Notes: generated by a model from the sequence alone, not told the origin. Positions 9,990 through 46,209 are shown, counted from the stretch's first letter. The stretch: DNA of 50,641 bases from Pelomyxa schiedti (GCA_020536535.1 JAHLWZ010000910.1:1-50641); one strand, 5' to 3'. Translations and numbers: made by a program.

Positions 9990-10079
9990 GTTGCCTACAG
10001 ATCTTGATAGCGCGATATTGATTTTTTTTTTTGTCTTTTCCAACGGTCTGTTGCGATCCCAAAGGCGCCAAGAAGAGGA
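9990..10079. promoter_or_regulatory. Putative 90-bp bidirectional promoter with a poly(T) tract
   Basis: Lies between divergent ATGs at 9989 (-) and 10080 (+) and contains a T-tract of about 11 nt at ~10022-10032. Confidence 0.55.
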
Positions 10080-16927: not shown

Positions 16928-17878
16928 CTACTCAGTGACAAATAGATACACTGCATACAGATACTGCTTGAATGTGAGTGTGTGGCTTTTTTGCTGAGGT
17001 GCAGCCCTCCTAACCAGAGACTGAACTCTCTGCTTGGATATATCCGGGTTCGTACTAGTGGTAGAAGAACTGGAAGCTGCTAACGCAGAAGCGGAGGATG
17101 TTGAACTTGCACTGGTTGTGGTTATCATCGTTGCTGTTGGAGGAGGTGTGGCGCGGGTGTGTGTGGGCGTTACTGCGCTTCCGGGGTGTTTGGTCATAAC
17201 TAACTGTTTCAGGCACTGGGCGAATTCGTTGGCTGTGATGGCTCCGTCGCGGTTGCCGTCGAGCCGCTGGAAAAGTGTTTTTAGAAGCTGGAAGGCATCG
17301 TCGACCTCGTCTTTCTCCTCGGTTTCGGCTTCATTCTGTGTTGTTTGTTGGTGCACTGGAAAAAAATGTGGTAGTGGAGGAGTTGAAGAGAGTTACAAGA
17401 GAATCAGGGAAACAGCAATGAGGCACCACAAGTTGGGAAGGAAGGGAGAGACAGAACGAAAAAAAAACGAAAGAGGGGGTTTTGTTTACGGGAGAAGAGT
17501 AGTCGTCGTCTGCGAACCACAGGAACAAAGCGTAGAGGAATTCGTCAAATTCCACAGTGCCACTGTTGTTGTAGTCAACTTTGTTTATAAACACAGCCCA
17601 TTCATCATCAGGGCAGGGCTCCCCAACCATCCCCTCCACCACAGCACGAAATTCTGCTATCGTTATGACTCCATCTGCTTATGTTGAGTACTGTTTTAAA
17701 ATTTGGCGGTTTTGGTGGCAAATGTGAACGCGTGGGTGCATGCTCCGGGGACATGGGTATAATAAACGTTTTTTTCTCCGTCCGTCAAAAACCCAAACTA
17801 CAAACCATTGTTGAGGTCAAATGCCCTGTACTTGTCATGCAAGCCAGAGAAAAGAACTTTGAGAACTTCATATGACAT
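16928..17878 (-). CDS. EF-hand Ca2+-binding protein (three canonical loops, one degenerate)
   Basis: ATG at 17878 (MSYEVLKVLF). Loops are DLNND|GVITIAE (joined across intron 17675-17805), DYNNSGTVEFDE and DGNRDGAITANE, followed by a Ser/Thr-rich insert and a degenerate fourth loop. Stop at 16928. Confidence 0.8.
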
Positions 17879-18127: not shown

Positions 18128-21100
18128 CTAACTTTCGGTTGGAGACTGGTAGAGCTGGTTTGTTGACATTCCAACCCCTGTCTCGTCGTAAATGGGGTTC
18201 TCTGTGATGCCTGCACTCGTACCATCAAGCAGCGAGTTTGGAATGTACCAATTGGCTCCGTACCGAATGTGCTTTTTTTTTTTTTTTTTTTTGTTAGATC
18301 TTCGGCCTTACCAGTTATAGTTATATTTTATTATTAGTTTACTATCGTTGGTATTGGAATGAGGAATTCACCTTGTACAGGAAAAAGCCAGCAACACCGG
18401 CAGCACAGCAACCAATTACGAGGCCAATAAAGGTGCCTGAAGCTATCAGAGAGTTTTGTTTTATCTCTGCATTGCACTTGCTAGCGTCCGTTGTTGTTCC
18501 GCCACACCGTCCACACACGTCGTTTGTCAGATTGCTATACTGCTTCCCGTCACAGCCGAGACAAGTTGAATTGCCATTGCACACTCCGCAGTAGTCATAC
18601 AAAAGGCCAGATCCAGGTACACCTAAAAAGTGGGGAAAATGAGCCTAATGAGGAAAGGTTCATGTGGAATCGGTTCTCACCATCACATCCCATGCAAGTC
18701 TGGTTATCCCCTCCACATACACCACAAGCATCCCAGTGCTTGCCACTCCACAGGCGCGCGTCGCACCCAATGCAAGTTGTGCCGTCTCCACCACATATTC
18801 CGCAAGTGTCATATAAAAGGAATGACCAAGGTACACCATCACACCCGACACAAAAGTTGGACCCGCCGCAGACATCACACCTAGGGAAATTTAGAGAAAA
18901 CATTGCAAACAACCTCCATACTTGTCGTAAACTGCTCCAGACCATGCAATATAATCACACCCAAAGCACGCGTTGCTCTCTGAAGCATTTGTAACGCAGG
19001 CACCACACATGTCATATTGCAGGTTCCCTGGTTTGCCATCGCACCCAATGCAATCATCTTTCCCTCCACAGACACCGCATTTATCAATCTGCTGCTCAGA
19101 CCACGGAACGTGGTCACAACCCAAGCACGTATTGTTTCCCTCACAGACTCCACAATAGTCATATGTGGATCCAGACCAGGGGATTCCATCACACCCAAGA
19201 CAGTCATTAGTTCCGCCGCAAACGCCGCAACTGTGCAAATCAATAAGGCGGTTTTCACGTTGCGAAATGAGTGGCTTACCTATCTTCCACTGTCCCAGAC
19301 CACGGCACATAGTCGCACCCAAAACAAAGATTCATCATCGATGTATTCGATGTGCATTCCCCGCAGGAATCATATTGCATGTACCCAGGAAGCCCATCAC
19401 AACCAATGCACTCATTAGAGCCACCACAAATTCCACATTTGTCAAGTACCTGTGCTTCCGTTAATGGTATAATGGAAACGTAAAACATACTGCCCCAGAG
19501 AAGGGAACGTAGTCACAACCCAGACAGGTGTCATTGCCTTGGCAGACACCACATGAGTCATATCCGACACCTGACCACGCAACTCCATCACATCCAAGGC
19601 AGTTGTCGTTTCCACCACATATTTCACACCTTGTTTTTTTGTTGGAATTACATATGTGGAACGGGAATACTTGTCAACAACAGCCCCAGACCACGGTACG
19701 TAATCGCAACCACAACATAAATTTTGTTTGGTTGGATCCGATGTACACTCGCCGCAATTGTCATACTGCAAGTTTCCAGGGAGTCCATCACACCCAATGC
19801 ATTCGTTTGATCCACCACATATTCCACACTTATCGACTATCTGAGATAGGTGAGACTTCTACACAAAAAAGAAAAACATCCTCACAGATTTTGACCAGGG
19901 AATATAGTCGCACCCAAGGCAGGTATCATTCCCAAGGCATTCCCCACAACTATCATACTGTGAACCAGACCATGCAACACCATCACATCCAAGACATGCG
20001 TTTGACCCTCCACAAGTCTCGCAACTGTGCAGATACAATGTTATGAAAAATGAGAGTGCAAAATAACAACCTGTCTTCGACCTTTCCTGACCATGGGATA
20101 TAGTCACATCCAAGGCATTGATTGATTTTAGTACTGTCTGAAGTGCATTCGCCACATAAGTCGTAAAGAAGGTTCCCAGGAAGTCCATCACAACCAATGC
20201 ACTCATTGTGGCCTCCACAAATTCCACAGTCATCAAAATCCTGGACAAACACCTTAGACACCATGCAAAGCACCGAAGAGGTAAACTGCATACAGTTTTT
20301 GACCAGGGTATATAGTCGCACCCAAGGCATGTGTCATTCCCCATGCAGACGCCACAGGCATCATATTGCGACCCTGACCAGGGCTCTCCATCACACCCAA
20401 GGCATGCATTTGTTCCGCCGCAAATGTCGCATCTGAAACAAGTAATTATTATTGGGAAAATGGTACTGGGGGCAACTTGTCTGGTACTGCTCCAGACCAA
20501 GGGACATAATCGCATCCAAGACATAGATTCATCATCTCTGGATCCGAAGTACATGCTCCACACATGTCATATTGCAGATAGCCAACATTCCCATCGCACC
20601 CAAGACACTCGTTAGAGCCACCACATATTCCACATTTATCTACAACCTACAAGGACTGAGCAAGAGGTAACTAAGAATAGGCATACGGCATATGACCATG
20701 GCTCATAATCACAACCAAGACATGTGTCATTTCCGGAGCATGCGCCACAGTTATCATACTGTGCGCCTGACCATGGCTCATCGTCACACCCAAGGCAGCC
20801 ATTGGATCCACCGCAGATATCACATCTGTGTAATTTAAATCGCCCAGACAGTATAACACCCACACGGATTACCTGTCTACAGTGGTGCCGGACCAAGCAA
20901 CATAGTCACAACCAAGACAAAGATTTGCCAGAGTAATATTGGAAGTGCATTCCCCACATAAATCATACGGCAAGTTCCCTGGAAGCCCGTCACATCCAAG
21001 GCACTCATTACTACCTCCACAGATTCCACAGTCATCTACCTCCTATTTTTTATCATTATGAAATCCCACCATTTGATGTGGTACCGCATTTGACCATGGC

Positions 21101-24100
21101 ACATAGTCGCAACCCAGACAAGTATCATTCCCTAAACAAACCCCACACGAATCGTATTGAGAGCCTGACCATGGGTCACCATCACATCCAAGGCAAGCAT
21201 TAGTTCCTCCACAGATTTCGCACCTAGGGTAAGATTACATGAAACGAAGTTAAACACTATCCCACTTACTCGTCTGGCACAGAGCCTGACCACGGAACAA
21301 AGTCACAACCCAAACACAGGTTCATTTCGGAAGTATTAGTGGTACATTCACCACACAAGTCGTATTGAAGGTTACCAGGTTTCCCATCACACCCCAGGCA
21401 TTCGTTATTTCCATCACAAATACCACATTCATCAAATTCCTTTTCTACGATTACCAAAAAAAAAAAAAAAAGGTTCCACATACCGTTTTTGACCACGGGA
21501 CATAGTCGCAGCCGAGGCATGTATCATTCCCTAGGCACACGCCACATGAATCATATTGTGAACCTGACCAAGCAACATCGTCACATCCAAAGCAACTATT
21601 TGTTCCTCCGCATATATCACAACTACAAAGAGTTAGTAAGCCATTGCACAAGAGGCGCAAAAACCTATCAACTTCTTTATTTGACCAAGCAACAAAATCA
21701 CATCCAAGGCAGAGATTCATCAATGAAGTGTTGGTTGTACAGATGCCGCAGAGATCATATTGGAGGTTACCTGGTTCTCCATTACATCCTATGCACTCAT
21801 TGGTGCCTCCACATATGCCGCATTTATCTACCGTCTATCTGGCTTCAGAACTAAATTAAGTTGAAGAGATAATCTTACAGTATTTGACCAAGGAACATAA
21901 TCACACCCAAGACATGTCCCATTACCCAGGCATACTCCACAAGGGTCGTACTGCGCGCCTGTCCAGGGGATACCGTCACATCCGAGGCAGGTGTTAGAGC
22001 CTCCACAAATATCACAGCTTTTAGGAATTTTCAGTGGAAGTCAAGGCGATTCAAGGTTTAACTTATCAGGTTTCATCTCTGACCAGGGGACAGCGTCACA
22101 CCCAAAGCAGAGGTTCATCTCATCAGGATCAGAAGTACATTCACCACACATGTCGTACTGCATGTAACCCGGCTTTCCATCACACCCGAGGCAATCATCG
22201 CTACCACCACATATACCACATTGGTCAGGTACCTAAAAGCAGTCAAATCCTCACCACGAAGACCACAGTCAGACCGTTTTAGACCAAGGAACGAAATCAC
22301 ATCCCAAGCACGTGTCGTTTCCAAAGCACACTCCACACGAATCATATTGTTCTCCAGACCAAGCCACATCATCACAACCAAGGCAGCTATCAGAGCCTCC
22401 ACATATATCGCATCTGCAAACAAGTCAGAGAGCGCCATGAAATATTAAAGAAACCGGTCCAATTTCAGCCCGGACCATGGGATCGAGTCACATCCCAAGC
22501 ATAGGTTCATCTTTGTGGTGTTCGATGTGCACTCTCCGCACTGATCGTATTGAAGATTTCCAGGGAGACCATCACACCCAATGCACTCATCCTTGCCTCC
22601 ACAAACATCACATTTGTCCACCTCCTATTGGAATCAGACGGTTGTTACTCTGGTGGAAGCAGCACCGTTTTTGACCAAGGGATATAGTCACACCCCAGGC
22701 AGGTATTATTTCCCAGGCAAATCCCACAAGCATCGTACTGTGCGCCTGACCAGGGAACTCCGTCACACCCAAGACAGCTATCAGTGCCTCCGCAGATATC
22801 ACACCTAAAAGAGTTAAATAACAATTTGTTACAAAGAATCAGACTTGTCAGGTTCTGTGCCAGACCAAGGGACGTAATCGCAACCAAGACACAAGTTAAT
22901 CATGCTACTATTCGAAGTACATTCGCCACATAAATCGTAAGGAAGATTCCCTGGCTCCCCATCGCACCCAATGCATTCATTGTTGCCTGCACATATATCA
23001 CATTTGTCAACAACCTGAGCTAAGTTACAAAAGCAATTCTTTATGTGCATATGCTTGTGCAAACCGCGTTTGACCACGGCACGAAATCACAACCAAGACA
23101 TGTATCATTCCCGGCACAAACGCCACAGTTATCATACTGGGCGCCTGACCATGGCGCATTGTCACACCCAAGGCATTCGTCCGTTCCACCACAAATATCA
23201 CAGCTATATCCCGTTATTTGAGGTTTGTTAGGGTGGAAAAGAACTTGTCAGGCTTCTTGTTTGAAAACGGAACGTCATCACATCCCAGACACGAGTTGAC
23301 ACTATCAGGATCAGATGTGCATTCTCCACACAAGTCATAGGGAAGATTGCCAGGGAGCCCATCACAGCCGATGCAATCATCCGAGCCTCCGCATATTCCA
23401 CACTTATCAACAATCTAGCCCAAAGTGAGCTTTCTAAAAAAAAAGTTACTTACTGTATTTGACCATGCAATGTAGTCACAACCAAGACATGAACTGTTTC
23501 CACCACACACACCACAAGCATCATACTCAGTGCCAGACCATGCGATGTCATTGCAGCCAAGACACTCGTTTGTGCCACCACAAACATCACAGCTGACCAT
23601 ACACGGTTAGAATTCTAGTGATTCTGGATGTTTGTCATACAGGTCATTCTTTTTGTTAGACCATGGGACATGATCACAGCCCAAGCACAAGTTCAGATCC
23701 TCAGTTACATTGGTGCACACTCCACACTGATCATATTGACGGTTTCCTGGGAGTCCATCGCAGCCGATACATTCATCTGCTCCACCACAAACCCCACATT
23801 TATCAATTTCCTGCAAATGAAAGAATTAACTGCCAGTGACAAAGCCAACACAAAGAAAACGCACTGCTTTTGACCAGGGTACGTAATCGCAACCAAGGCA
23901 GGTATTGTTGCCCATGCAAACACCACAGAAGTCATAAGTATTGTAAGACCAAGCCTTACCATCGCAACCAAGGCAGCTATCAGAACCACCACAAACACCG
24001 CATCTGGAGAATCCATTAGTGAAAATGTGAGATACATTTTGGGTACTACTGATCCTCATGCTTATTGGACCAAGCAACATAATCACAGCCCAAGCATAAG

Positions 24101-27100
24101 TTCATGAGGTCTGGGTCTGATGTGCATGCTCCACATTCATCATATGGAAGGTTTCCTGGATTTCCGTCGCAACCGATGCACTCATCGGAGCCGCCACAAA
24201 TGCTGCACTTGTCAACCTCCTGCATCGAATTAGTCTTTCCACCTATCACTCACATGCATACCATATTCGACCAAGGGACATTGTCGCACCCAAGGCAGGT
24301 GTTGTTTCCATCACACTCACCACATTGATCGTAAGATAAACTACTGGGCTTGTCATCACAACCAAAGCATGAATTATGGCCACCACATTCGCCACAGTCA
24401 TCTTCCTCCATTCCGGACCAAGCATGTCCATCACAGCCAACACATAAATCACCTCCAGCGCAAATACCACACTAGGAGATTTAAGTTTGGATTGGAAAGT
24501 TAGTCTGAATATACCTGGTCATACACTTTCCCACTGAAGCACACTCTGTCACAGCCCATTGCTCTGTTGAGTCCTCCACAAATGCCACAGTCATCCACAC
24601 CTTATGAGATATTAAAGGTATGATAGAGGTATTTATGAGCGTCAAGGTACTTGTATTACTCCAGGGTTCCTTGTCGCAACCGAAACAGCCATTGGACCCA
24701 TCACACTCTCCGCACTATTAATGTAAGGATGGCCAAAAAAAATATGCAATACCTCATCATACTCCAAGTAAGAGAACAGAACTCCATCGCATCCAGTGCA
24801 GGAACTGGTTATCAAATAAATAGTAAAAAGAACAGGAGAGGCCGGTACGAATTGTCGCCACCGCAGACTCCACAATCATCAAAGGCAATGGTATCCCATT
24901 GCACACCATTGCATCCAAAGCATTCCCTATTTCCACCACAAACACCACAGGCATCGTAGCGGAATCCACTGTAGACTAGCCCATCACATCCTACACCTAT
25001 GGAACTTAGACCAGAACACGCATTAAATATACTCACAGGCATTATCCCCCATGCAGACACCACAGGCATCCACTTGTGCAGTACTCCATGGGAGACCATC
25101 ACAACCCACGCACGTCATGGCAATAGGATTATTTGTGCAAATTCCACAACTACTAGCATTAGATTCCAAAGGTGATTGGAAGCACCTGCCTGTCATAGAA
25201 CCACCCAGAATTCGGAACATTATCACACCCAACGCAGTCTGGAAACCAATTTAAAAAAAAACTTCCAATTCAGTCTGGGACTACCTGCTTTTCCTTTGCA
25301 AACACCACAAACATCGAGGTCAGCCTTGGACCAAGGCACTCCTGTCAATAGTGCTTATTAGAAAACTACAGTGGAAATTTCGTCTACCATCACAGCCAAC
25401 GCAAGAGGTTCCATCACCACCACATAGGCCGCATTGATCATATTGCTTCCCAGAATAAGCCACACCATCACACCCATGACATTCATTCTAAATACACCCC
25501 GTTAGGGAGCTACATGTTCATTTTGGCAGTATACCGTGCCCTTGCAGACTAGACAGTCATCAAGTTCGGCTTTACTCCAGGCCTTATCATCACAACCTGT
25601 GCAATTATCCATTGCGAGATCTCCAGGCAGTAGGCATTGACCACACAAGTCATATGTATGCGATCCAAATGCCTCTCCATTGCAGTCAAAACAGGAATTT
25701 GTGCCTTGGCACACTCCTATATTCCAGGGACATTTACTTCATGAGTACCGTTTCATTGTATAAAGGCCCTCATACCACATTGATCGTCCTTTGCCTTGGA
25801 CCATAGAATTCCATCGCAGCCTCGACACGATGTCGTGGTTGCCGAACAGCGTCCGCACTCATCATATTGCAGGGGTGGTACAGTGGCGAGACCATCACAC
25901 CCAATGCACCTATGAACAGTTAGTGAGACTTGATCAAGGTAATATAAATGACTTACTTGTTTGTTCCATTGCAGACACCACACAAGTCGTATTCGGCTGT
26001 ACCCCATTTCAGGCCAAAGCAGTCTATACAGCTAGAGCCGTTTCCCCCACAAATTCCACATTGATCATACTACACCTCCGTTAAACCTTACTCGATGGGA
26101 AAAAATTCAATACCCCAGCAGGCGGAACAGTAAACAGGTAATCACATCTAACATCGAGGACATAAGAGTCCAATGAATTGAATTGAAGTGAAGTGAAGAC
26201 AACAAACCCCATGCAAGCATCAGAGCCATCACACACGCCACAGTTGTCCAGGTCCTTATTTCCATAGGGAACCTGCTGACAGTCAAGACCTGAAAAATTC
26301 ATCAGGAAAGAGAAAGGGGGTGGCAGAAGTACAGGCGTTTGATCCATTGCAGACCCCACAGAGATCATACCTATAGGCATAAATGTAAACACTTGATTTT
26401 TGGAGATATCTTACATAAGTTTGGAAGGTGTCCCATCGCAACCAAAGCAGGTGGAGTTATCTCCACCACAAACGTTACATGCATCTACTGTGGCATGACC
26501 GCCCAGCTGGCCAAAACAATCTAAGCAACTTGTGCCATCCCCCCCACATACGCCACATATATCCACCACACTGTGGTGAGGGATTAATTATACATTGGGC
26601 AATGTAGAGGGAAAAAGAACATACGCAATTCCATAGGGGATATTTTTACAGTCAAAGCAAGAGTTAGCATTGGCTAAGGTCACACAGAGCTGACATTGAT
26701 CATAGATCTTCCCAGAGTTGCTCACATGGTCACACCCTAAGAAATAAGTGTCACAGAAAGCATTATCTGGCAGCTGGACAAACCGAAGCAAGGAAATACA
26801 GAATAAACCACTATTGATGCAGCTCCCCATCCAAGAACATTCAGGGTTATAGTACAATTATTTACTGTACTACAAGCAACTGAATACATTTGCAACACGT
26901 GTAAAAGAAATACCTTGCGAGAAGAGAGACATTAAAGGCATATGTATGGAATGGAGACACCCCAGAATATGATGCTGGTGTTACTGATGTAACGTAGGAA
27001 TACTGGTCTGAGGAAACAACCATCTTCAGGATGTTTGTAAGAATAAATACCATTCTCAGAGATTACCTTCAAGTTAGATGTCAGGTACGTCAACCCCGCC

Positions 27101-28536
27101 AAAATGGCAGGAACTACATTGGAGCTATCAGAGGCCAGCTCAAATGATGAGCCAAAACTAGGAGTCAATTAGTCATTCCCGATTTGCTCTTAATAAAGCG
27201 CATACCCAAGTGTGGTTATGAGGCTATTGTACGTTGTCATAACAGTAGGGAAGGTGGATGCGTCGTTGTTAATAACCGCAAATAGAGGCACGACATTCTT
27301 ATTGGTCAGGTGAGTTTTCAACCCAGATGCGGAAGGATAGTCCTCTCCTATGGAAAAGTTAATTTCTGCTTCTAATGTTGTAAGGAACCTGTTCCATAAT
27401 ATCTACAAGAAGTTAGGGAGGTTCCTGCAGAATCAAGAAGAGTTCCAACTGGATAACAAGGAGGCGTGTAACAGTCATCCACACAATCATAGTTATTGAG
27501 CACAGTCGAATATTTATTGTTCCAACATGAAGAAAACTTCATTTCGCGCTCGTAATGGTAATTAATATCAGTTATGGTAACAATCATCTATTAGGAGTGA
27601 GGTACGGTGATGTGACTCGCGACCCAACCTTGAGGGAAGTTGATCTCCAGCCATAGTTAGTGCAAGTTGCCTGTACAATACCAACTAACTGTGATTCAGG
27701 GTCGTCGTAACCCCAGCCAATAACAGTTTCCTAGATATTTTCCATGTAAGCAAACCAACTTCCAGCAAGCACCTTCTGAACATACCGCTACTTTTGCTTG
27801 TAAACTATTATAGTTGCTGGACAAGGTAGAAAGTGGCCAAAATCCATTATCTACAGCATAGGTTCCTGCATCACCAGCAGGATTCAGAGGCTTATCTCCA
27901 AATGTAGAGTATGCAAAGTTCGTCTCTGGCCGAGAGCTTCGCACAGAGGATATAATTCGAGGAATTAGCATGGCCACCATCTGCACATCTGGCGTCATAC
28001 TTCCAGTAATATCCTAAATGGCATGTTTGAAGTACTTCTCACTTAAGGAGAAAAATACTTGACTGAGCCAAAGATCCAACGGCTGAAGTTCTGAGGGAGG
28101 AACATGGACTAAAATGGGCACCACGAGTTTTTGATTCGGCATCAAGAAGACTTCCGTGATAATAGGGTCAATCTTGGCAGTTCAAGTGTGAGGGGAAGAA
28201 AAACAATTTGCTATTGCGTACTACGGAACCAGCAGTTGTCCACACAATCTGACTGTGACTGTGGAACCAGGTCCCGTTAGTGCAAGATCCCACAGAGGGG
28301 CCTGTGGTGTAGTTAGAACCCAGAACGAAACCAAACCCATACGTTTTTTTTTACGATGGGAAATGTGTGCACTTACCAGAAGCAGTTCCTGCCATGCATT
28401 GTGCGGTGCCAGTACACCAACCACATGAAGTACTTTGTACACAAGTTGTGCATATCGTAGACGTGCAAGCAGTGGCTGCGTAACCACAGAAACATAGCAG
28501 TGTGCACAGAAACAGATACGGTACTGTTGGGGACAT
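18128..28536 (-). CDS. Giant integrin-beta-like type I membrane protein (SP-PSI-hybrid-betaI/vWA-hybrid-Cys repeat stalk-TM-NPxY tail), multi-exon
   Basis: Signal peptide MSPTVPYLFLCTLLCFCGYAATA; PSI CTSTICTTCVQSTSCGWCTGTAQC...C...W; IDPIITEVFLMPNQKLVVPILVHV; PLDLWLSQ|DITGSM; FAYSTFGDKPLNP; GYDDPESQLVGIVQATCTNYGWRSTSLK..MIVTITD; EDYPSASGLKTHLTNKNVVPLFAV; ELASDSSNVV. These are colinear with the remembered integrin beta consensus (PVDIYYLMDLSYSM, GFGAFVDKP, DAPEGGFDAIMQATVC...GWR...LLVFTTD, DYPS...L..KNINLIFAV, LSxDSSNV). Tail ...ENPIYDETGVGMSTNQLYQSPTES*; TAG at 18128-18130. Confidence 0.88.
18480..26730 (-). repeat. Protein-level Cys-rich tandem repeat stalk (GCDxxPWSxxxxDxCGVCGGxNxCL), ~75-85 units, with a ~400-bp four-unit higher-order period over ~18900-24430
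   Basis: Directly visible in the minus-strand ORF fragments. The same four-unit succession recurs about 14 times with introns at equivalent positions. Counts are by hand. Confidence 0.9.
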
Positions 28537-29061
28537 ACTTGACGGATTATGGGTGGGGCTCGTTGCTCCCCTCCTTACAATATACAGTATAGCTGGGTAC
28601 AACAGAAAGGAACCCAACAAAGGGTTAGGGTGATGTGTGGTTGCTGTGATTGTTTCTTTTTGGTTATTTTTTTTCACACTGGATGAAACGGAATGGTTTT
28701 CCTGCAAAAGAGGTTCTGCCTGTCAGTTTTCGAGTTTGGAACAGCATCTATAATCAACGCATCTGTTGATCATGCGAAGAATAGACACGGAAACGAACGG
28801 ACCTTCTTTGCAACGACTGTTACATCACAACCAAAACTGCTAACGCCAAAACATAAACATCCTTCAAACCAATCACACACAACTTCTGTACAAAACATAC
28901 ACCACCACCATCATGCCAAGCCGCGGCTCTAGGCCGTATCTACTCCTGAACTCTTTGTTGGTTTCAGGTTTGCCCATTCCTCGTTTCCATTTTTCGTTTC
29001 TTCGTAACCCAATACGGCGCACGAGTGGTGCACAACAATAACGACGGAGAATGATGAATGA
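28537..29061. promoter_or_regulatory. Divergent intergenic region shared by the two giant surface-protein genes
   Basis: 525 bp between ATG 28536 (-) and ATG 29062 (+). It contains T-rich and CA-rich tracts and no convincing ORF. Confidence 0.5.
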
Positions 29062-32000
29062 ATGAATGATGGTGGTGCAGGATGTACAGTGTGGATGCTA
29101 CTCGTTGTTGTGACTACTATGACAATGACGCGGCAATGCGGGGCTACCCTTCCTACGGTTTTTCTTGAGGCTGAATATTACACTACGGCGGGTAGTTGGA
29201 GCAAGGCATCGTCTTCTACCGAATGGGACTCGTGTGGTCAGTATGTCACGACATCCACTAGCACTGGTGGCACTGCTGTGACTTACTCTTTCTCTGTTTC
29301 CTCGTATGTGTTGGACTTATTTTTTTTTTTTTTCTTTTTCTTTCTTTCCTTTCAGTGGCTAACTAACTTGATTAGGGCGGGAACTTATTCTGTGTGGATA
29401 TTATCGAGGATTGCAAATAATCCTGCTGGTGCCTCTTTGTGGCTCAAATTTGACTCTGTGTGTACTTTGCCCTAGCCTGTTCCACTTACATTTCCTAGGG
29501 GTCAAACATAGCTTGGGATCTTGTTGTTTTTGGGAACTCATGGCGCTACGTGGCAGATGTGCCACTTACTTCCGGTTCACATACCTTATCCATCACAATG
29601 AGGTAGATTATTCACCCACTTTTTTTTTTGTTTACTTTACCCTATTAGGAAATACAAAACCAAATTATACATGGATAAAATAATGATTACGGATCCATCT
29701 ACACCAAAGATGGGCTACACAAATAAAGGGAAAGCTGCACAGAACATTCCCACAGGAAAATGTATCTCTTTACTCCCACTAGCACTGTTCTTACAAATTA
29801 CACAAAGGTCAACAGGTCTACTTCGAGGTATGCCTTTTATTGCTGTTAGATCTTACATTAGGCTATAGGCGGAATTTGCATCATCTCCAGGGTCTCCAGT
29901 TTCACTTCTTGCATCTTCTACAGCCTCAATGGAAGGGGCACTGTATAAGGCTGAGTCCAGTACAACATCTTGCAGTACAACTTCTCGCTATGCCAAAGTA
30001 AAGTGATTCTTCCTTCGCCAGCTTATATTTGCACAGTTCAATGTCACTTGGTCAGAGTCAGTTTATCGCCCTGTATGGGTCAGGGTGATTGCCCCCACTT
30101 CTTCATTGAATCAACTCTCCATTTCCGTATGGATCTCTTACCTCAATCAAGAACTCAACATGTTTAGTCCTCCTCTTGTGGGGCTCTTTCTTCATTAACA
30201 GTCTCCAATCCAAGTCAAGAGTTCCAATGGGTCCCAGTACCTCCTTTTTCAATCCTTACTTTTTTTTAATTCATTCTTCCCTAAGTTTCCTGACTTGGTT
30301 ACTGTACCAAATATCTTTTTAATAACCTTTGTTACTGGCTACACATATCTTGACAAAATTTATATTGGATGGGGGGTCCCTACAACCTCTGGAACTCCTG
30401 TAAACATTCCTAGTTCAAGTGCGCATTAATACATTCCCTTGTTTACTTTTGATACTCTTTCAAGGTACTAGTTGTTCAACATATAATGGTCTATGTGATC
30501 CTGTTACTTCCTGTAGTACCGGACCTGTATGCTCCAGTTGTCCAATTGGTTACACTGGATGTGGCAACATCCAATCTTGCAACAAACCCAATGGATGTGT
30601 GCGAACTGTTCCATATGGCTGCTTTTTTGATCGAAGCATTTCCTTATTTGCTTACACCGGAACAACTTCATTCCCAACAAGTTCTATTACTATAGAAATG
30701 TGGGCTTCAAGAGCTGTGTACGTTCCAACTTCAGATATTACCCTTTTGCACTATATTAGTGGTACTTCTGAGTTCCACATCCGTTATAATCCAACTATTG
30801 GATTGTATTTGTATGCGCACTGCTACCTTCCCATTGTATTCTCATTTCCATTCCAGGTACACTTCATTGGTATCTGTCAAGCCGACAACACCCATTCTTC
30901 TTACTCCTGATATCTGGACTCACATTGCTGTTAAGGGTAATTATTATCTTGGTAGGTTCTTATCTTCTTTTAGATTTCATATGATAGAACCACTGCCAAG
31001 TTCTATATAAATGGGGCTTTAGTGGCAACTGTTACAGCCTCTTCTCCTGTTATTACGTCTCCTGGAGTTATTTCTATAGGGAAAAAAGTGGGTAAGTGCA
31101 AATTTCCTTGATTCTTCTTGTACTCATTGTTGTAGTTGATTTCACGAAGGATTTGACACTTCCGGCCTTTGGGGTTGATGAATTGAGAGTGTGGTCAACA
31201 GTTCTAACCCAAGCAACGATTCAGAGCCTCATGGGTGCAACACTGACGACTTCACAGCCCAATCTTCTTCGTACCAAGTTTTTTTCGTTTTCTTTGAGTT
31301 CCTAATGTTTCATGAAGATGTGTGGAGTTTTGGTCCTGACACAGGATCCTGCAGTCCTGTAACAACTGAGACTTTTGGTTTGGTAACAATGACAACATCC
31401 CTGACTGAATGTATGAAAACTTTTTTTTTCAAGCTTACGGTCTCAGGGTATGCCCTCTATCAACTATATTGGGCAACTGGCGGTCCCGATTGGTATTCTC
31501 AGACAAGTTGGCTCACAGGTCAGCCTTGCTCAGGAACAAACCTCTCAAGCCCAGTGTGGTACGGGCTGGATTGTGACAATTCAGGAAGTGGTAGAATTGC
31601 TACCATGTGAGAATAACTGCACATTAGCTCTTTCTCACTTTTACTAGAAATTTGGCCTTTAATAACCTTGTTGGAACGCTACCTTCATCCCTTTTTGCAC
31701 CTTTTTCCAAGCTTTCTATTTTGTAATTAGCACATTACTAATGATCGTCCCTTACACTTCTCAAGAATGGTTGATCACAACACATTAAGTGGTGCGATAC
31801 CAATAGATATAGGTTTCCTTACAAGTGCTGTTACAATGTTTCTTTCTCTCATTGTGAAACTCAACTAACCTTGCCTTGCAGATTGATGCAAAACAATCTT
31901 CTTCAATCTATGCCAACAACAATATCAACTCTAACTTCATTGCAAAAGCTGTGAGTTTGTGCAATTCTAGCTATGCGTTAATATTCATGTAGATATTTGC

Positions 32001-35000
32001 AGAACAACAATCTTACAGGAACAATACCTGATGTATTTAATTCAATGACATCACTGGTTTTCTTGTACATGCAATATAACTCCTTGTCAGGAAATCTTCC
32101 TTCTTCTCTTAGCAGCCTCTCAGCCTTAAAATATCTGTACCTCCCTTGCATAAAGAATCCGTAATTTAATTTCTCAACAGGGATTTGAGTTACAACAAGC
32201 TTTCAGGACTATTTCCTTCCACTATTATTAACAGCCTGATTTCCTATATGTAACACATTGACTGGAATCTTCTTTTGGTTAACATTATTAGGGATGTTTC
32301 TGGCAACTCCTTCTATGGCCAAATGCCAAACCGAGTGACAACAAGCAACTCAAACATGATACTGATGTAAAACAAATTCCTCTTTTCTCCCTTTTCACAA
32401 TCCAAAAAGGAATTTCACAGGCAACAAGTTTATATGTCAAGTGCCACCATTTATGAAATCTTCAACACTTACATTCCCAATTGATGTACATGGCAGTATT
32501 TTCTTTTGCCCTCTGAATAGTTTAGTAAAAACCGTTGAAGGAGCCTCCTGTGGTAAGATTCTTTATCGTTCTGGCTCTGTCCTAACTTGCTGTAGCACCT
32601 GTGACATTACTCTCCATTACACCCAATTCTTTCAACCTCTCCAACAGCTTTTCTGGTCAGACAGCCGTTATAAATGCCACAGGCCTAAATAGCTGTGCCG
32701 GGATACAAGTATATGTTCCTGGTGCTGGATATATTGCTCCTGTTTCCCTAACCGAATCCCTACTCACCTTCGTTATCCCTGCTCATTCATATGGCATTGT
32801 TCCAATACGGCTTATGTGGATTGGTTCCTACAATAATAACTCTGTTGTTTCATCAAATTCCCTCAACTTCAAATACTACTACCCATGCTCCCCACGGTGT
32901 GTGTCTCCATATGGGACTTGTGCTGGTTTGAGTGGTGTATGCATTTGCAATGGCACACATGGCGGTATGTCCAGGCCTTAAAATAAAATTTCAACCTCCA
33001 TTGCAGGCCCTGATTGCAGGTTGTATTCCTGCCCGGCTAATTGCAATGGCCGTGGTATTTGCAACTATACATCTGGTGTTTGCATTTGCAATGCACCATA
33101 TTTTGGGAAGTCTTGCAGTGCAGCCTCCATTTCATGTCCAAATAGCTGTTCCAGGTATTACCCCGTTTTATGCAATTTCAGTCTCATGAAATGCAGTCAC
33201 GGGCAATGTGATCTCTTCACAGGAAAATGTTCATGCTACCTCGGATATTGGGGTGCCAATTGTTCAAGCAAGACCTGCCCACCATACAATTACCCCTACT
33301 GCTCAACACCAAATGGGCAGTGCAATGGGACATCAGGCAAATGTGTATGTGCTCCAGGATGGATTGGAGATTCCTGTTCCATTCCTATCAAGACTTGCCC
33401 TGCTAATTGCACAAGTACAAACTATGGCCAATGCAACCAAGCAACTGGTGCCTCCTTTTTTTTTCACCCATCAAAATAGTCTAACCTCGAAAAGGTGTAT
33501 GCACATGTTTTACATATAAGGGACTTATTCATAGTGGGCCTAATTGCAGTGAAATAATCTGTAGTCCATCTTGCAAAAATGGAGGCGTGTGCAATACTTC
33601 CAGCAGCACCTGTGTTTGTCCAAAAAATTACTATGGCAAGGACTGTTCAACTCCAAGATTTAACTGCCCCGGGAACTGCACTGGCCCTAGTAATGGAGAT
33701 TGTAACACTCTTACTGGGAATTGCTCCTGTCGATCTGGCTTTTCTGTAGTTTCTCCATAGCGTTCCAATCTCAACTCTTGTAGGGTAGCAATTGCTCTTT
33801 GCGTATCTGTCCAGGCACCCCCCAGTGTAACTATCCCAATGGCACATGCGATACCTCCACAGGGCAGTGCTTGTGTAAGAACGACACGACTGCTGGCTAT
33901 TATCATACTGGTTACATGTGTCAGTATCTGAACCACTACTGTCCAGGGAATCCGGAATGCAGTGGTGCACATGGTCACTGCAACCCCCAGACAGGTGTTT
34001 GCATGTGCAATTATCCTTGGGTCCTTAATAACAATTGTTCTGCTGCTAAGTGTCCCAATGATTGTTGGGGGCATGGTACATTGTATGGATTATTTCATTC
34101 ATTTGAACTCGCCATAGGGGACTGTGATATTACACAAGGGAACTGCAAGTGCTGGGCCCAGTATAATACATCTGTTGATTGCCAATTCCTCTACAGTACA
34201 ATTTTTCGACTCTCCTCTCTTTCTCATTCTCATCAGTTGCTTGTCCATCTTCATGTAATCATGGCTACTGTGATACACGCAGTGGTGACTGTATATGCAC
34301 CTCACCTTGGACCAATACTGCCACTGAAAATTGTGCCACAAAATCCTGCCCAGGTGACTGTAACGCTGGGCTTACAGGAACGTGTGTCAATGGCACTTGT
34401 GTATGCAACGCAGGTTTGAGTCAGTCGTTTTGTAGACAGTTTTACATATTCTTGCAGGTTGGACTGGGAGCCAATGCACTGTTGTAAATAAGACTTGTAC
34501 AAGCAATTGCAATACTCCTAATGGCCGGTTAAATCTTTTTTCCCTTTTTCTTTATTAGTAACTAGATCTAGCTGTGACACGACAACTGGAGAATGCTTGT
34601 GTTATGGTTTGTATTATGGAGATAAATGCCAGTCTAGTGTGTCCCGTCCCTGCCGTATCACAACGGTCTCATCATTCAATAGAGTCATGCCTCAATAATT
34701 GTTCTATGCATGGAATTTGCAATACCACCTTGGGTTTGTGCACGTGTGGTAGTGGATGGGAACCACCAGATTGCTATGTAAACCTTTGTTCACTTGAAGA
34801 CTTCTGCACATCAAGCTTTCGGGGTACTTGCAATACCACAGGTGGGAATTGCATATGCAACTACCCATACTATGGAAGCAAGTGTCAGTACAAGATGTGT
34901 CCTTCGAATTGCAGTGGAAATGGCCTGTGCAATAACATTACGTACGTTGAATTTTTTTTTCATCTCTCAACTTAACTTATGATTCACTTAGTGGTGTTTG

Positions 35001-38000
35001 CACATGCCTGAGTGACTGGATAGGAACGGTATTCTATTTCCATCTTTTTTTTTTTTTGCTTTTCATCTTTTCCCCAGACATGCAGTACGTTTTCCGCTAT
35101 GTGCCCACCGACACGGGATAATGGGTGCTATGGGAATGGAGTGTGCAACCACACAAGTGGTTTATGCACTTGCTATACTGGTTACTTTGGTTCTGATTGC
35201 CATCAAAGTATGAACCCACCATATTACCACTTCTGATGAACAACAGAGTTGTGTCCAAATAACTGTTCTTCTCATGGACTGTGCAATTACACCACGGGAA
35301 CTTGCTCTTGTGCGCAGAACTATTCAGATCCAACAGATGTTGCTTGCAGTACCCCTTACTATTCTTGCATGTACTGTTTCATTCTGTGGTTTTTCTCTAT
35401 TTACCTCTATAGTGACAATTTATGTTCGGGAAATGGTTACTGTAACCATCTCGAAGGCAAGTAGAAACCAATTCATTCCAATTCTAAATGACCTCTTGTC
35501 AGGCAATTGTTTCTGCTATTATGGCTTCTATGGAAACGTTTGTCAGTACAAGTACTGCCCTTCTAAATGCGAAGAGCATGGCACATGCAATACGGTATGA
35601 CTTTTGAAACCAAAATATCCTAATTTGCTACTTCAGACAACTGGGATTTGCAAGTGTAACCCTCATTGGTTAGGCGACTCGTGTTTAGAGGCCAACTGTA
35701 TGCCACTGATGTAAACACTACCATTTTTGAATTTTTCCATAGATTCCTGCCCAAAGAATTGTTCTGGGCCACATGGGCATTGTGACAAAACTACAGGCCT
35801 TTGTACCTGTTTTTCTCCATACTCACAGCCAGATTGTTACTATGGTGCGTCTCCCCATCTCCCACTTCACTTTTCACTCATTCTTCTAGCCTCTTGTCTT
35901 CTGAACTGTTCTTTCCCACATGGTGTCTGTGACAAGTTTACCTCATTCCTGAGTCTTTTACATCTCAACCATCTTTTAGCTTGACTGGATCTTGTTCTTG
36001 CAATGAATCTTTTACAGGAAAAGGGTGTCAGGTTGCTAATTTTACTTGTAAGCCAAGCTGCAAGAGTGGAATGTGTAATACAATGTATGCTTCCCCTTGT
36101 TTTTTGCCCTGAAGTCACCTTCAAAACCAGGAATGGCCAGTGCATATGCAACTCAGGCTATTATGGCACCTCGTGTGAATATAAAGAATGTGGTGGCAAA
36201 ACCCCCTGTTCGGGTCATGGTGTCTGTGATAATACAACAGGAATTTGCACTTGCTCCACAAATTTCACAGGGCCTTCCTGTGAAGTACCCAATTGTATAT
36301 TGTTTTACTTTCCATTAATGGAACTAAAAAAAACCTATTGCACAGATCCCTGCCCAAATAACTGCACAGGGTCACATGGACACTGTGACCCAAATCGTGG
36401 ACAATGTGCATGCTTCTCTCCCTGGCTACTCCCTGATTGCCACTATGGTTATTACCTTTGTACTACCTTCCTCCTAAAATTCAGAAAGGCCAATGCCAAC
36501 TGAACTGTTCATATCCTCATGGAAATTGTGATAAGTAGGTCCCCGTATCACAAGCCAGGCTCACCTTTTTAGGTTGACAGCAACATGCTCTTGCAAAACG
36601 TTCTACACTGGGAAAAGTTGTCAAATTGCAAATTTTACATGTTCCCCTACATGCAAAAATGGAACATGCAATACCCAGTATGCCTTTCACACGTAACTTC
36701 TAAGTCTTATCAAAGTGTAGGAATGGGGATTGTGTTTGTTATGGGGGGTATTGGGGGATATCATGCGAGTATAAATCGTGTCCCACAAAGTGCGAACTGC
36801 ATGGCATATGCAACAATGTGTGTTATTTTTTCCCCCTTTTTTTACCTAACATTCCTTGGTTCAGAATACTGGTATTTGTATGTGTTATCAAAACTGGACC
36901 GGCTCAAACTGTCTAGAGGCTGATTGTAAAGTTCCACTTAAAAGCCCTAAACACCAACAATTCTAGATACTTGTCCTAATAACTGTTCTGGCTCCCATGG
37001 CAATTGTGATCAAACCAGTGGTCATTGCGCCTGCTACTCTCCTTGGACACTACCAGATTGCTATTATGGTAGCACTCCATATTGATGCTCTTTATTAACT
37101 CAACATAGCCCAATGCTCTCTCAACTGTTCATATCCACACGGCCAGTGCAATAAGTTTGTAATAGAAACACCACCCACAAGAAATAACTTTTTTTAGACT
37201 CACTGGCGTGTGTGCATGTCAGACAGGATACACAGGAAAAGGGTGCCAGATTGCCAATTTCACTTGCAGTCCTCCATGTGAAAGTGGATCCTGCAACTCA
37301 CAGTACTCTTGAAGCATAGTTCTGTTTTGCTCATGACATTTCAGGGATGGTAAGTGTGTCTGCCTTGCTGGGTACTATGGGAGCTCTTGCCAGTACAAAT
37401 CCTGTCCTTCAAAATGTGAAATACATGGCACTTGTAATAATGTATGCTGGAATTTGGGAACTTTTATATGACAGAATCTAGCTAACTGGTGTTTGTACCT
37501 GTGCGCAAAACTGGACTGGCTCGAGTTGCATGGAGGCTAATTGTAAACTTATTCTGCATTCTGCTGTTTTGTATTGATTTTAGACAGATAAATGCCCGAT
37601 GAATTGCTCAGGCACACATGGCAACTGTGACAAAACAACTGGAAAATGTGCTTGCTACTATCCCTGGAACCTTCCAGACTGTTACTATGGTTATAATCTA
37701 CTTAGGTAAATTCGCGCTAACAATCAATAGCACAATGTTCCCTTAATTGCTCTTATCCACATGGGTCTTGTGACAAGTATCGTGCCTGCTTGTAACTTTT
37801 TGTACCTTAAAAATACCAGGACAACAGGAGTATGTAATTGTCAGAAGTTTTACACAGGCAAGGGTTGTCAGATAGCGAATTTTACTTGTACACCTTCCTG
37901 CCAAAATGGGAGTTGCAATGCACAGTACTCTTCCTATTAATTCACGGAATTTCTTATATTTGCAGAACGGGACATTGTGTGTGCTTTGGTGGGTACTGGG

Positions 38001-41000
38001 GCCCGTCTTGCGAGTACAAATATTGCCCTACAAAATGTGAACAGCATGGCATTTGTAATAATGTGCATAAACTTTGTTTGTTTCTCCTGTTCTCAACAAC
38101 AAAACAATCCTTCAGGTTAGTGGCATCTGTATGTGTAATCAAAACTGGACTGGTGTGAACTGTCTAGAGCCTGATTGTACTTCTTCTTTCGTCTCCTCTG
38201 GGGATTAATTGTAATCATTGCAGATCCCTGTCCCCATAACTGTACAGGCTCCCATGGTCACTGTGATAAAACCACTGGAACATGCGCTTGTTACACACCC
38301 TGGATCCTACCAGATTGCTATTATGGTTGAATAACTTTCTTCTTGCTTGTTTAATGGCGTAATCAGCTAAATGTGCTCTTAACTGCTCATATCCACATGG
38401 CACTTGTTCTATGTAATGCTTCCGGTTTTTTTTTTCTTGGTAAATGGACAAAAGACTGAATGGTACATGCGCATGCCAGAAGTATTACACTGGACAAAGT
38501 TGCCAGATTGCCAATTTCACCTGCACGCCCTCTTGTTTGCATGGCTCATGCAATTCCCAGTAGATTTCCTCCCCCCCCGGGTTTATATTCACTGGCTTTC
38601 AGGAATGGTCAGTGTGTTTGCACTGGAGAATACTATGGACCTGGTTGTGCCTATAAACACTGTCCCTCGAAATGTGAGGTTCATGGTGTCTGTAACAATG
38701 TAAGTATGATGGCACTCTTGACAAATAAATAAAATATCTCTTTTTTTACAAAGATAACTGGAGTTTGTACGTGTGCACAAAATTGGACTGGCTCCAACTG
38801 CTTGGAACCTCATTGTATCTCCCCTTTCTTTACACAACCAATTAAACACCGTTAGATCCTTGCAGCCGAAACTGTTCAGGGTCCCATGGAAACTGTGATT
38901 CGACCATTGGCAAGTGCGCCTGCTATTCCCCATGGACCCTGCCTGACTGTTACTATGGTAACTCCATTATACAATTTCGACTTACTGCTTTTAGCAACAT
39001 GCCCTCTAAACTGCTCTTATCCTCATGGGACCTGTGATAGGTTACAAAAAAACTTCTCCTTTTCATTCTTATTTTTTCCAGTCTTACTGGGAAATGTACC
39101 TGTAAGACATATTATTCTGGTAGTAGTTGCCAGATTGCAAACTTTTCGTGTGTCCCAGCCTGCAAGCATGGCTCCTGCAATTCCTTGTCTGCTAAAGTTC
39201 CTTTAATATTTCTGACATACTTTAGGACTGGAGAGTGTATTTGCTTCGGCGGATTTTATGGTACATTATGTGAATACCAGTACTGCCCTACCAAGTGCGA
39301 ATTACATGGTGTCTGCAATGCGGTAACTCTCTAGTAACGATTCTTTTTTCTATGTTTTGATTATCAACAGACAACTGGCATTTGTGGTTGCAGTCAAAAC
39401 TGGACCGGGGCGTCATGCATGCAAGCTAACTGTATTTCTTATTGTACATTGAAGGGAAAATTCTGAACACAAATAGTTCCGTGTCCAAACAATTGCACTG
39501 GTGGCCATGGTCATTGCAATCACGTAACTGGTACATGCTCCTGCTTTTCTCCTTGGATGGCACCTGATTGCCTTATGGGTATGTTTTTCTTGGTCTAAAT
39601 TATAGATTCTAACCTTAAACTAGCCCAATGCAGTCTTAACTGTTCATATCCAAATGGAGTTTGCAATAAGTTACCAATCAACCAAGTTTTACTTTTTCTC
39701 AGTACACCTAGGACAACTGGAGTATGCCATTGCAAAGCAGAGTACACAGGGAAAACTTGCCAAGTAGCCAACTTTTCTTGTCACCCTTCATGCATCAATG
39801 GAGGCGCATGCAACACACAGTATGTGAGAACTACAAATTCCAAAATTAAATATATTTGTACAGAAATGGTAAATGTGTATGCTATGGTGGTTACTATGGG
39901 AACTCCTGTGAATACAAATCTTGCCCTGCGAAATGTGATGTTCACGGGTTCTGCCACAATGTATGCTCAAATAGGACATTTGGGAAAATCCCTCATACTT
40001 CTCTCAGGATACCGGTTTATGCACCTGCCTACAAAATTGGACAGGAACAAGTTGCATGGAGGCAGATTGTATCGATTACTCTTTCCCGCGCATATCTCAT
40101 ATCTTTTTTCCACCCTCAGATTCCTGCCCAAACAATTGCACTGGGGTACATGGCCACTGTGATCACACGGTTGGAAAATGTGCCTGCTATTCTCCCTGGA
40201 TTCTTCCTGATTGCTATTATGGTTGAAAAGGAATTTTAAATTTAGTGCTCATATCACATAGCTTATTGTCCTTTGAACTGCTCGTATCCCAAGGGTGATT
40301 GTAATGTGTATGTCATAGGCTATCTGTTCTTCACTAACCTCTCCAGTTTGACTGGAATATGCTCTTGCAAAGATCACTACACTGGAAAGAATTGTCAAAC
40401 TGCCAATTTCTCGTGTTCACCAGCTTGTAAAAATGGAGACTGTAACACACAGTTTGATTCATTCCTTTTTGGTTTTTGCTATTCTTACTTGCGTTTTTTT
40501 TAGAAACGGCAAATGTGTTTGTCTTGGGGGGTACTATGGTTCTTCTTGTGAATACAAGTACTGCCCCTCAAAATGTGAACAGCATGGTATTTGTAATAAT
40601 GTAAGCTTTCTTTCTGTTTTTTAAACCCTTTGACTTTGTTTAGAACACTGGAATTTGTGTGTGCAATGGAAATTGGACTGGGAACTCTTGCATGGAAGCA
40701 AATTGTATGAGTTTTTTCCTTTATTGTTTCTTACAAGTTATACTAGATGAGTGCCCCAAGAACTGTTCAGGGAGCCATGGACATTGTGATGCCACGACCG
40801 GTGTTTGTTCTTGCTTCTCCCCCTGGACCCCCACTGATTGCAGCCTTGGTAATTAGATTAATGTAATGCGCCTAGGACTAACATCGATTTAGCAACATGC
40901 GCACTGAATTGCTCTTATCCTCATGGTGTTTGTGATAAGTGTGTAATAGCAACTTTTACTCTTCCGTTCAATTTCCATAGGTTGAGTGGGCTGTGCAATT

Positions 41001-43127: not shown

Positions 43128-43162
<35 letters not shown>

Positions 43163-45979: not shown

Positions 45980-46209
45980 ATAACTGGAGTTAACCACGCC
46001 CACCCACAACCCTGTAATCTACATGTATTAAGATTTCAAAAACATGTTCCCCTCACATCAAACGAAGGTAACTTGCCCTAGAAAGTAATAGTTCGTTTCC
46101 TCCGATCGGTCTGAACATTTTTAGACCCATTTTCCAAGAAAGTCAGTTTCTTGGCCCAACCAGACCCTTTTCGTGCCTGTTGCCCTCTAGTAAAGCACAA
46201 CAACAACAA

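Follow-up and report, generated by a model that had tools for sequence, protein, structure and literature searches.

A probable integrin beta gene with a very long cysteine-rich stalk, paired with a divergently transcribed giant gene in Pelomyxa schiedti

Introduction

A stretch of 50,641 nucleotides (nt) from Pelomyxa schiedti (GCA_020536535.1, JAHLWZ010000910.1:1-50641; the whole stretch is called the window here) carries on its minus strand, at 18128..28536, a gene whose predicted product joins an integrin beta-like head to a giant cysteine-rich stalk. This locus raises two questions: whether the product belongs to the integrin beta family, and what it would work with at the cell surface. 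An earlier interpretation made from the DNA alone (the sequence-only reading) had described a complete PSI-hybrid-betaI head, a dual NxxY tail and a non-canonical stalk, with no alpha subunit gene nearby.

For the first question, our analysis indicates that the gene product is very probably an adhesion receptor of the integrin beta family, of type I and with a single membrane pass, namely an amoebozoan type I integrin beta (ITGB) with an extreme stalk. This class is already published. The new elements are the membership of P. schiedti, the length of the stalk, and a conserved, length-matched pair formed with a divergent neighbour gene.

In amoebozoans, ITGB was found in 19 of 113 data sets, including the genome of the archamoeba Mastigamoeba balamuthi, and the same architecture was reported across Amoebozoa and in Rigifila (Kang et al., 10.1101/2020.04.29.069435). 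The sequence-only reading had pointed to Kang et al. 2021 on amoebozoan integrins, and correctly so, with ITGB in 19 taxa in that preprint. The preprint's main text makes no mention of P. schiedti, and neither neighbour pairing nor length tracking is reported there. No paper linking Pelomyxa with integrins was found; the supplementary tables of Kang et al. 2021, which lay outside the search, may list Pelomyxa.

Structure of the gene and its relatives

The gene runs on the minus strand from an ATG at 28536, through coding sequence at 28536..18131, to a TAG stop at 18130-18128, as the sequence-only reading had placed it. The head was spliced manually (GT-AG introns of 41-75 nt) and the stalk by a splice-aware dynamic programme, and both were corrected against the paralog P0001. 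The spliced product comprises 2602 amino acids (aa) from 56 exons, with 55 introns of 38-100 nt (median 45) and zero in-frame stops over 7.8 kb. The splice model is validated by P0001 (1368 aa), which is colinear with it from residue 13 to the C-terminus. The domain order is signal peptide, PSI-like Cys knot, first hybrid half, betaI, second hybrid half, about 80 four-Cys modules, transmembrane (TM) helix and a 47-aa tail, where the signal peptide, TM helix and tail were assigned by reading the sequence.

P0001 (KAH3744682.1) is a P. schiedti protein from GCA_020536535.1 and is 71% identical to window exon 4 (HMMER). The architecture of head, stalk, TM helix and tail is common to P0001, to a second P. 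schiedti protein, P0021, and to P0016 of M. balamuthi (EukProt EP00727 P004613). The window head was 61% identical to P0001, 47% to P0021 and 36% to P0016. Both P. schiedti proteins are labelled "exocyst complex subunit 4"; Pfam found Integrin_beta and no exocyst domain at their loci (P0001 at L001 10001-15382, P0021 at L002 10001-19296). The P0021 model continues into a PDEase_I domain and is probably two merged genes. The sequence-only reading had expected the window protein itself to be annotated as a Cys-rich hypothetical protein; among database proteins of 258-3840 aa, no annotated product with the window head turned up. Judged by these similarities, the window gene is one of at least three predicted integrin beta paralogs of P. 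schiedti. The published amoebozoan ITGB class is extended to this species, and the misleading GenBank name of the paralogs is corrected.

A head of the integrin beta type

An alignment of the spliced window head with panda ITGB4 (blastp, 79.7 bits) covers 401 columns at 24% identity and brings every signature motif into register. In order, the head reads ...QPLDLWLSQ, DITGSM, FGDKP, GYDDPES, YGWR, TITD, a Cys-rich loop, EDYPS, NVVPLFAV and DSSNVV. Within betaI, the DITGS of the MIDAS (the adhesion site that depends on a metal ion) lies at 28013-27999, FGDKP at 27902-27888, YDDPE at 27709-27695, TITD at 27578-27567, DYPS at 27342-27331 and DSSNV at 27129-27115. Exon 7 was the only window exon to reach the Pfam Integrin_beta profile (19.7 bits, E 7.6e-4).

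The paralogs were used for the profile tests because single window exons are too short to score alone. P0001 scored 76 bits on Integrin_beta (PF00362), over positions 3-246 of 248. The Pfam check that the sequence-only reading had proposed came out positive over the full profile for this paralog, and for the window itself at exon 7 alone. In a search of PDB sequences with the P0001 head, all 57 of 57 matches were integrin beta chains; the best was beta-2 (5.4e-10), and it spans hybrid-betaI-hybrid. An AlphaFold2 (AF2) model of P0001 residues 1-470 had a mean predicted local distance difference test (pLDDT) score of 67. The cores of the hybrid and betaI domains scored high, the PSI region and the Cys-rich loop low. 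In this model, strands flank the vWA core at 71-104 (first hybrid half) and 362-427 (second hybrid half). With the P0001 head model as query, the top 50 Foldseek matches were all integrin beta, with E of about 1e-25 over about 400 columns.

The signal peptide (residues 1-23, 28468..28536) is a hydrophobic N-terminus ending ...AATA, and its position matches P0001, P0021 and P0016. It is followed by the PSI-like Cys knot with 7 Cys (residues 24-59, 28285..28467), which is split by an intron at 28376-28302. The seven N-terminal Cys align with the PSI of panda ITGB4, and one further Cys stands after the hybrid domain (FPCFGC). Animal integrin beta chains have a 7+1 Cys pattern of the PSI, and the arrangement of Cys seen here is in line with it.

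The first hybrid half (residues ~63-110, 28080..28275) aligns via P0001 to beta-2 residues 77-110. BetaI, a vWA domain of five exons (residues 111-365, 27085..28079), was delimited by the Pfam match of exon 7 and the alignments to ITGB4 and P0001. By alignment, it holds a Cys-rich insertion with 5 Cys that coincides in position with the specificity-determining loop (residues 246-292, 27393..27533), which is conserved in P0001 and P0021 and absent from bacterial homologs. The second hybrid half (residues 372-438, 26732..27023, ending ...FPCFGC) aligns via P0001 to beta-2 residues 357-425. The split hybrid with an inserted betaI had been claimed from the DNA alone, and it was recovered here: VVSSDQYSYVTSVTP..., YAFNVSLLA and CTITLNVLGWGAASIVVY form residues 372-430, directly after betaI, and align to the second hybrid half of the paralogs and of animal beta chains.

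The MIDAS is complete, consisting of D118-I-T120-G-S122, E205 (of DDPE) and D234 (of TITD), with Thr in place of the first Ser in the alignment to ITGB4 and, via P0001, to beta-2. The adjacent site (ADMIDAS) has P-D in place of D-D. The synergistic metal-binding site (SyMBS) retains D (of FGDK), D, P and E, and its Asn is changed to Gly. ADMIDAS is also variable in amoebae according to Kang et al. (10.1101/2020.04.29.069435).

Animal integrin beta chains (beta-2, beta-1 and beta-3: 5e6r_B, 4wk4_B and 3fcs_B) share with the window protein the order PSI (a PSI-like knot in the window protein), hybrid, betaI, hybrid and the motif series of a DxSxS-type MIDAS, FxDK, D-x-P-E, GWR, TD, DYPS and SSN(I/V)V. 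Unlike them, the window protein has Thr as the first MIDAS Ser, P-D at ADMIDAS, Gly at SyMBS, no membrane-proximal HDR(R/K)E and no known alpha partner.

The head could also be a Sib-type or generic vWA adhesin that merely resembles integrin beta, which we consider highly improbable. The Dictyostelium SibA-E proteins (Cornillon et al. 2006; Pfam PF24909) likewise serve adhesion in an amoebozoan: they cross the membrane once, have a vWA domain and engage talin through two NPxY motifs. The vWA_SIBA-E profile matched P0001 at 38.9 bits and P0016 at 39.2 bits, and had no Pfam match on the window's own exons. Sib proteins also contain Cys-rich repeats, and they carry N-terminal bacterial-type repeats. 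To our knowledge, they have neither a PSI nor a hybrid insertion, whereas here a hybrid domain encloses the vWA and a PSI-like knot precedes both. Furthermore, Integrin_beta scored higher than the Sib profile in both relatives, reaching 52 bits on P0016 and about twice the Sib score on P0001, where it covered the full profile; the Sib matches were partial in both. The PDB matches included no non-integrin vWA chain. Clustering with Sib or generic vWA domains had been named beforehand as the outcome that would speak against an integrin; the profile and PDB comparisons favour integrin beta, and the tree described below contained no Sib sequence.

A stalk of tandem four-Cys modules

The stalk (residues ~436-2520, 18477..26787) was delimited by pattern matches and Cys count. 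It contains 327 Cys, equal to about 82 four-Cys units, and 78 matches to CxxCx(3-9)CxxC, giving about 80 modules of about 25 aa. The module is of the type GCDG-x-S-x-D-x-CG-x-CGG-x3-C, and the pattern DxCGxCx(3-7)CxGC, in which the GG is not required, was matched 41 times. The ~80 modules of the window compare to 33 in P0001, 29 in P0021 and ~28-31 in P0016, so that the window stalk is about 2.6 times the length of its relatives' stalks. Animal integrin beta chains differ, with four I-EGF domains and a beta-tail domain in this place.

The only Pfam or PDB similarity of the stalk was to ADAMTS_CR_3, at its final 26 positions, which hold the GCDG...D.CGVCGG motif. The ADAMTS cysteine-rich region (ADAMTS5, 9rwm_A) matches the stalk nearly letter-perfectly in its last 26 residues, as GCDG-x3-S-x4-D-x-CGVCGGD-x-S-x-C. 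In ADAMTS proteins the motif is single and lies within a larger domain, whereas in the window stalk it is the entire repeat unit, present about 80 times. AF2 on one four-module stalk exon gave a poor model (pLDDT 56), with the repeat alignment out of register and half of the query uncovered.

Amoebozoan type I ITGB proteins have the stalk motif DXCGXCGGX(3-6)CXGC, NPXY tails and sizes of 595-3296 aa (Kang et al., 10.1101/2020.04.29.069435). Because this is the standard amoebozoan motif and size range, the window stalk is unusual only in degree; the motif count given in the preprint is 3-7. The giant, non-canonical stalk of the sequence-only reading is therefore very long and non-EGF as described, while its novelty of kind falls to the published motif. 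Other features that the class shares with the window protein are a MIDAS-bearing betaI (an IPR002369-type vWA), a PSI (PSI-like in the window protein), a TM helix, NPXY and the lack of HDRKE.

Within the stalk, 12 tandem two-exon cassettes were delimited at 19450..24219 by their strict 170/139 exon lengths. Each cassette spans 390-409 nt and contributes four modules, its two exons, of 170 and then 139 nt, each being followed by an intron. Overall identity among the copies is 62%, with 67% for exons and 38% for introns, the latter being saturated, and exon lengths and phases are invariant. This combination of invariant exons and saturated introns indicates that the array is old, under selection and no assembly artefact. 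Twelve-fold tandem duplication of this two-exon, four-module unit, of old date, accounts for the extra stalk length.

Only with extreme improbability would the gene model itself be an artefact, in the form of separate head and stalk genes, a pseudogene or a mis-assembled repeat. Such an error would agree with the failure to find an annotated product containing the window head among database proteins of 258-3840 aa, and with a model drawn from genomic DNA. The evidence against it is the spliced frame of 7.8 kb without a stop, the strict lengths and phases over 24 cassette exons, and the same domain order in P0001, P0021 and P0016. In addition, an assembler cannot collapse or inflate the array, because its copies are only 62% identical.

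Membrane anchor and cytoplasmic tail

The TM helix (residues 2530-2554, 18375..18449) ends in GFFLY, is rich in GxxxG-type small-residue motifs and is kept in P0001, P0021 and M. balamuthi P0016. The last intron, of 100 nt (18272..18371), is placed at a junction FFLYK/HIRYGANWY identical to that of annotated P0001, and the final exon (18131..18271) encodes the 47-aa tail. Across the junction the protein reads ...GFFLYK/HIRYGANWYIPN...ENPIY...NQLY..., with GANWYIPN at 18259-18236, NPIY at 18199-18188 and NQLY at 18160-18149. As an observation on splicing, the 3' end of the last intron (18272-18300) contains 21 consecutive A that abut the AG, which is unusual beside the pyrimidine-richer acceptors of the other 54 introns.

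The dual NxxY tail claimed from the DNA alone is present as NPIY and NQLY, nine residues apart. The first motif, NP(I/V)Y, is kept in 3 of 3 P. schiedti copies, and the second reads NQLY in the window, STLY in P0001 and NPNF in P0021. The TM helix and the GFFLYK-HIRYGANWYIPN block hardly vary among the three P. schiedti paralogs and can be recognised in M. balamuthi. P0016 shares the GFFLYK...GANWYIPN juxtamembrane block with the window protein and differs from it in a tail that, as read here, lacks NPxY. In animal integrin beta chains, too, the tail is about 47 aa long and carries an NPxY near the membrane and a distal NxxY. The HDR(R/K)E membrane-proximal clasp motif was absent from the tail in the comparison of paralog tails, and its absence in Amoebozoa has been reported (Kang et al., 10.1101/2020.04.29.069435).

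Weighing the family assignment and the origin of the head

Several points weigh against assigning the window gene to the integrin beta family. The strongest profile, PDB and structure tests were done on P0001 as a stand-in for the window protein, at 61% identity, and PDB sequence searches with window exons 4, 5 and 7 singly came back blank, the exons being short and their scores weak. The claim of a complete PSI-hybrid-betaI head stands for hybrid, betaI, hybrid and MIDAS; for the PSI there are the Cys pattern and a Pfam match of 15.7 bits (E 0.02), below the cut-off of 23.1, together with a model of low pLDDT in that region. On the stalk exons and P0001, Pfam gave no EGF, I-EGF or Integrin_B_tail match, and on the window exons no match of the integrin beta cytoplasmic family. 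The gene model was built from genomic DNA only. In a phmmer search with the window head, P0003 scored 72 and 64 bits for its two domain copies and the Methylobacterium protein WP_269780293.1 scored 55 and 38, both above panda ITGB4 at 36.6. Finally, a betaI tree left the order of animals, bacteria and Archamoebae unresolved.

That tree was small, built from available sequences and including no Sib sequence. It placed the P. schiedti proteins as ((window, P0001), P0021) with M. balamuthi outside, and the archamoebal clade was monophyletic. The branch of ITGB4 was very long (3.47 changes per column).

The phmmer scores would agree with, and the deep order in the tree leaves room for, a head that is no vertically inherited integrin beta but a bacterial-type integrin-beta-like vWA, acquired by gene transfer and then joined to a stalk and tail of eukaryotic kind. 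Proteins of this type (bacterial Methylobacterium sp. Leaf118 WP_269780293.1 and metagenomic P0003) score 231-276 bits on Pfam Integrin_beta and are the closest to the window head outside the archamoebal proteins. We nevertheless regard such a transfer as improbable. The ITGB4 branch that those scores are measured against is very long, and no PSI, Cys-rich loop, four-Cys stalk or TM helix with NPxY tail was present in the bacterial matches examined. The archamoebal clade is also intron-rich as well as monophyletic, and its architecture is the one reported across Amoebozoa and in Rigifila. Membership in the integrin beta family is the reading that we retain.

The bacterial and metagenomic homologs are of some interest by themselves. 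P0003, P0004 (WP_269780293.1), P0006, P0008 and P0012 are surface proteins with one or two Integrin_beta vWA domains scoring up to 276 bits. These domains sit among RTX, cadherin-like and Ig-like repeats, and P0003 and P0014 align over parts of the hybrid halves. P0025 (L003 2529-7769) is a metagenomic protein of 1746 aa in which an Integrin_beta domain stands beside Kelch beta-propellers and repeats of the EGF and GCC2_GCC3 types; its gene is intronless and lies on a 10-kb contig.

The divergent neighbour and its matching length

The main point of interest is the genomic context, in which three old paralogs each retain a divergent partner gene. In the window, a head-to-head neighbour of about 114 exons and about 3915 aa occupies 29062..45976 on the plus strand. 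It was delimited by Pfam on pieces of open reading frame (ORF), by a programmed model and by colinearity with the neighbours of P0001 and P0021. The two start codons are separated by an intergenic spacer of 525 bp (28537..29061), a putative shared promoter; the corresponding spacers measure 467 bp at L001 and 443 bp at L002. No significant common DNA motif was found among the three spacers.

The neighbour, predicted to pass the membrane once, consists of a signal peptide, Laminin_G_3, leucine-rich repeats (LRR), about 79 EGF modules of the teneurin/tenascin type, a TM helix (NWWIIVVCAGAG...) and a Ser/Gly-rich tail, which is a long low-complexity region rich in G, S, N and K at ~45300-45976. 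Its EGF array includes 13-14 tandem five-exon cassettes (35748..44540) of about 630 nt each, with four EGF modules each and a motif spacing of 593-646 nt. The cassette exons are near-invariant at 102/46/105/97/61 nt, and identity among the copies is 57% overall, with 65% for exons and 40% for introns.

At L001 and L002, the directly upstream divergent gene is also a Laminin_G_3/LRR/EGF_TEN protein, of 2075 and 2037 aa, respectively; the pairing is thus found at 3 of 3 loci. The head of the window neighbour is colinear with the L001 copy (50-80% identity) and the L002 copy (37-47%), the same ranking as for the beta heads. Beyond the gene pair, nothing in the flanks is common to the window, L001 and L002, including the phosphodiesterase at 46-50 kb.

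The numbers of modules in the two genes were compared at each locus, with Cys/4 for the beta stalk, Cys/6 for the neighbour's EGF array and splice-independent motif counts for both. The window has 81.8 beta modules and 78.8 neighbour EGF modules (motif counts 71/74), L001 has 33.5 and 31.5 (25/27), and L002 has 29.2 and 28.0 (21/26). The neighbour counts at L001 and L002 may be slightly low because the models there fall short of the annotated products by 105 and 295 aa.

The divergence of the cassettes is alike in both genes, at 67% exon identity for beta and 65% for the neighbour. On these sequence comparisons, both window genes gained about 48 modules after the window/L001 duplication, through independent cassette amplification of similar age. 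The length tracking is suggestive and no proof, because three loci that arose by duplication in one lineage amount to effectively one independent contrast, which weighs against the idea of a partnership.

A related arrangement can be found in the literature. A "tenascin" ORF adjoins ITGB on an M. balamuthi scaffold and was used there only as a contamination control (Kang et al., 10.1101/2020.04.29.069435). In the literature searched for tenascin and Mastigamoeba, this preprint was the only relevant hit.

Possible partners and mechanism

How would such a receptor work? The head would bind ligand through the MIDAS cation, and the stalk could serve as a long semi-rigid spacer that keeps the head far from the membrane. 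By analogy with animal integrins and Dictyostelium SibA, the NPxY tail may recruit talin-type FERM/PTB adaptors and so connect to actin. The sequence-only reading had suggested alpha-independent function, homo-oligomerisation or a novel partner, arguing that so long a leg could not fold against a conventional alpha leg. For the partner of the chain, three options were considered, namely an unlinked alpha subunit, the chain itself and the neighbour, and each was rated roughly alike, as possible and rather unlikely when taken singly.

The sequence-only reading found no alpha gene in the window, and the six-frame motif scan bore this out, with no FG-GAP calcium-loop motif in any frame (a weak test). 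A single GFFKR-like string (GFFRK) was rejected as a chance occurrence, since it lies in a 10-residue ORF piece. The absence of a nearby alpha says little, since linkage is not expected and the ITGA genes of M. balamuthi lie elsewhere. Alpha and beta integrin genes are unlinked in animals.

One tentative explanation, then, is an ordinary alpha/beta heterodimer with the alpha encoded elsewhere in the genome, an irrelevant neighbour and a stalk that is a mere spacer. M. balamuthi, the nearest sampled relative, fits this explanation in having two ITGA genes, located elsewhere, and a nearly full adhesome (Kang et al., 10.1101/2020.04.29.069435). The same preprint describes these ITGAs as lacking signal peptides, which argues the other way, as do the missing alpha-clasping HDR(R/K)E motif and the lack of an alpha in the window. 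The stalk of about 2090 aa, furthermore, has no known matching alpha leg.

Kang et al. proposed, for amoebae with a single integrin chain, that it acts alone or as a homo-oligomer, and many amoebozoans possess only ITGA or only ITGB (10.1101/2020.04.29.069435). For the window protein this is again possible at best, and the abundance of GxxxG-type motifs in its TM helix is consistent with it. Self-association leaves the conserved pairing and the length tracking with the neighbour unexplained.

Those two features suggest, as a speculative hypothesis of comparably low probability, that the integrin beta works together with the divergent LamG-LRR-EGF giant, either as a partner in the same membrane or as a receptor-ligand pair. 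The more specific version, in which the archamoebal integrin beta pairs with the neighbour instead of, or besides, an alpha and the two stalks are kept equal module for module, is somewhat more doubtful still. The locus thereby gives a specific candidate for how beta chains function in amoebae without a matching alpha. If the neighbour pairing were true, it would be a previously unknown class of integrin partner, in the form of a height-matched heterodimer or a receptor-ligand pair. It would also suggest partners other than alpha for the beta chains at an early stage of Amorphea, the group of animals, fungi and amoebae.

Other observations in the window

Just downstream of the integrin gene, at 16928-17642 on the minus strand, ORF pieces resembling EF-hand loops were observed (DGNRDGAITANEF and VDYNNSGTVEFDEF). 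They probably belong to a gene for a small calcium-binding protein.

The G+C content of the window rises to 0.53-0.61 at 9000-11000 and at 45000-47000, compared to a background of about 0.42. The second of these regions overlaps the low-complexity tail of the neighbour gene.

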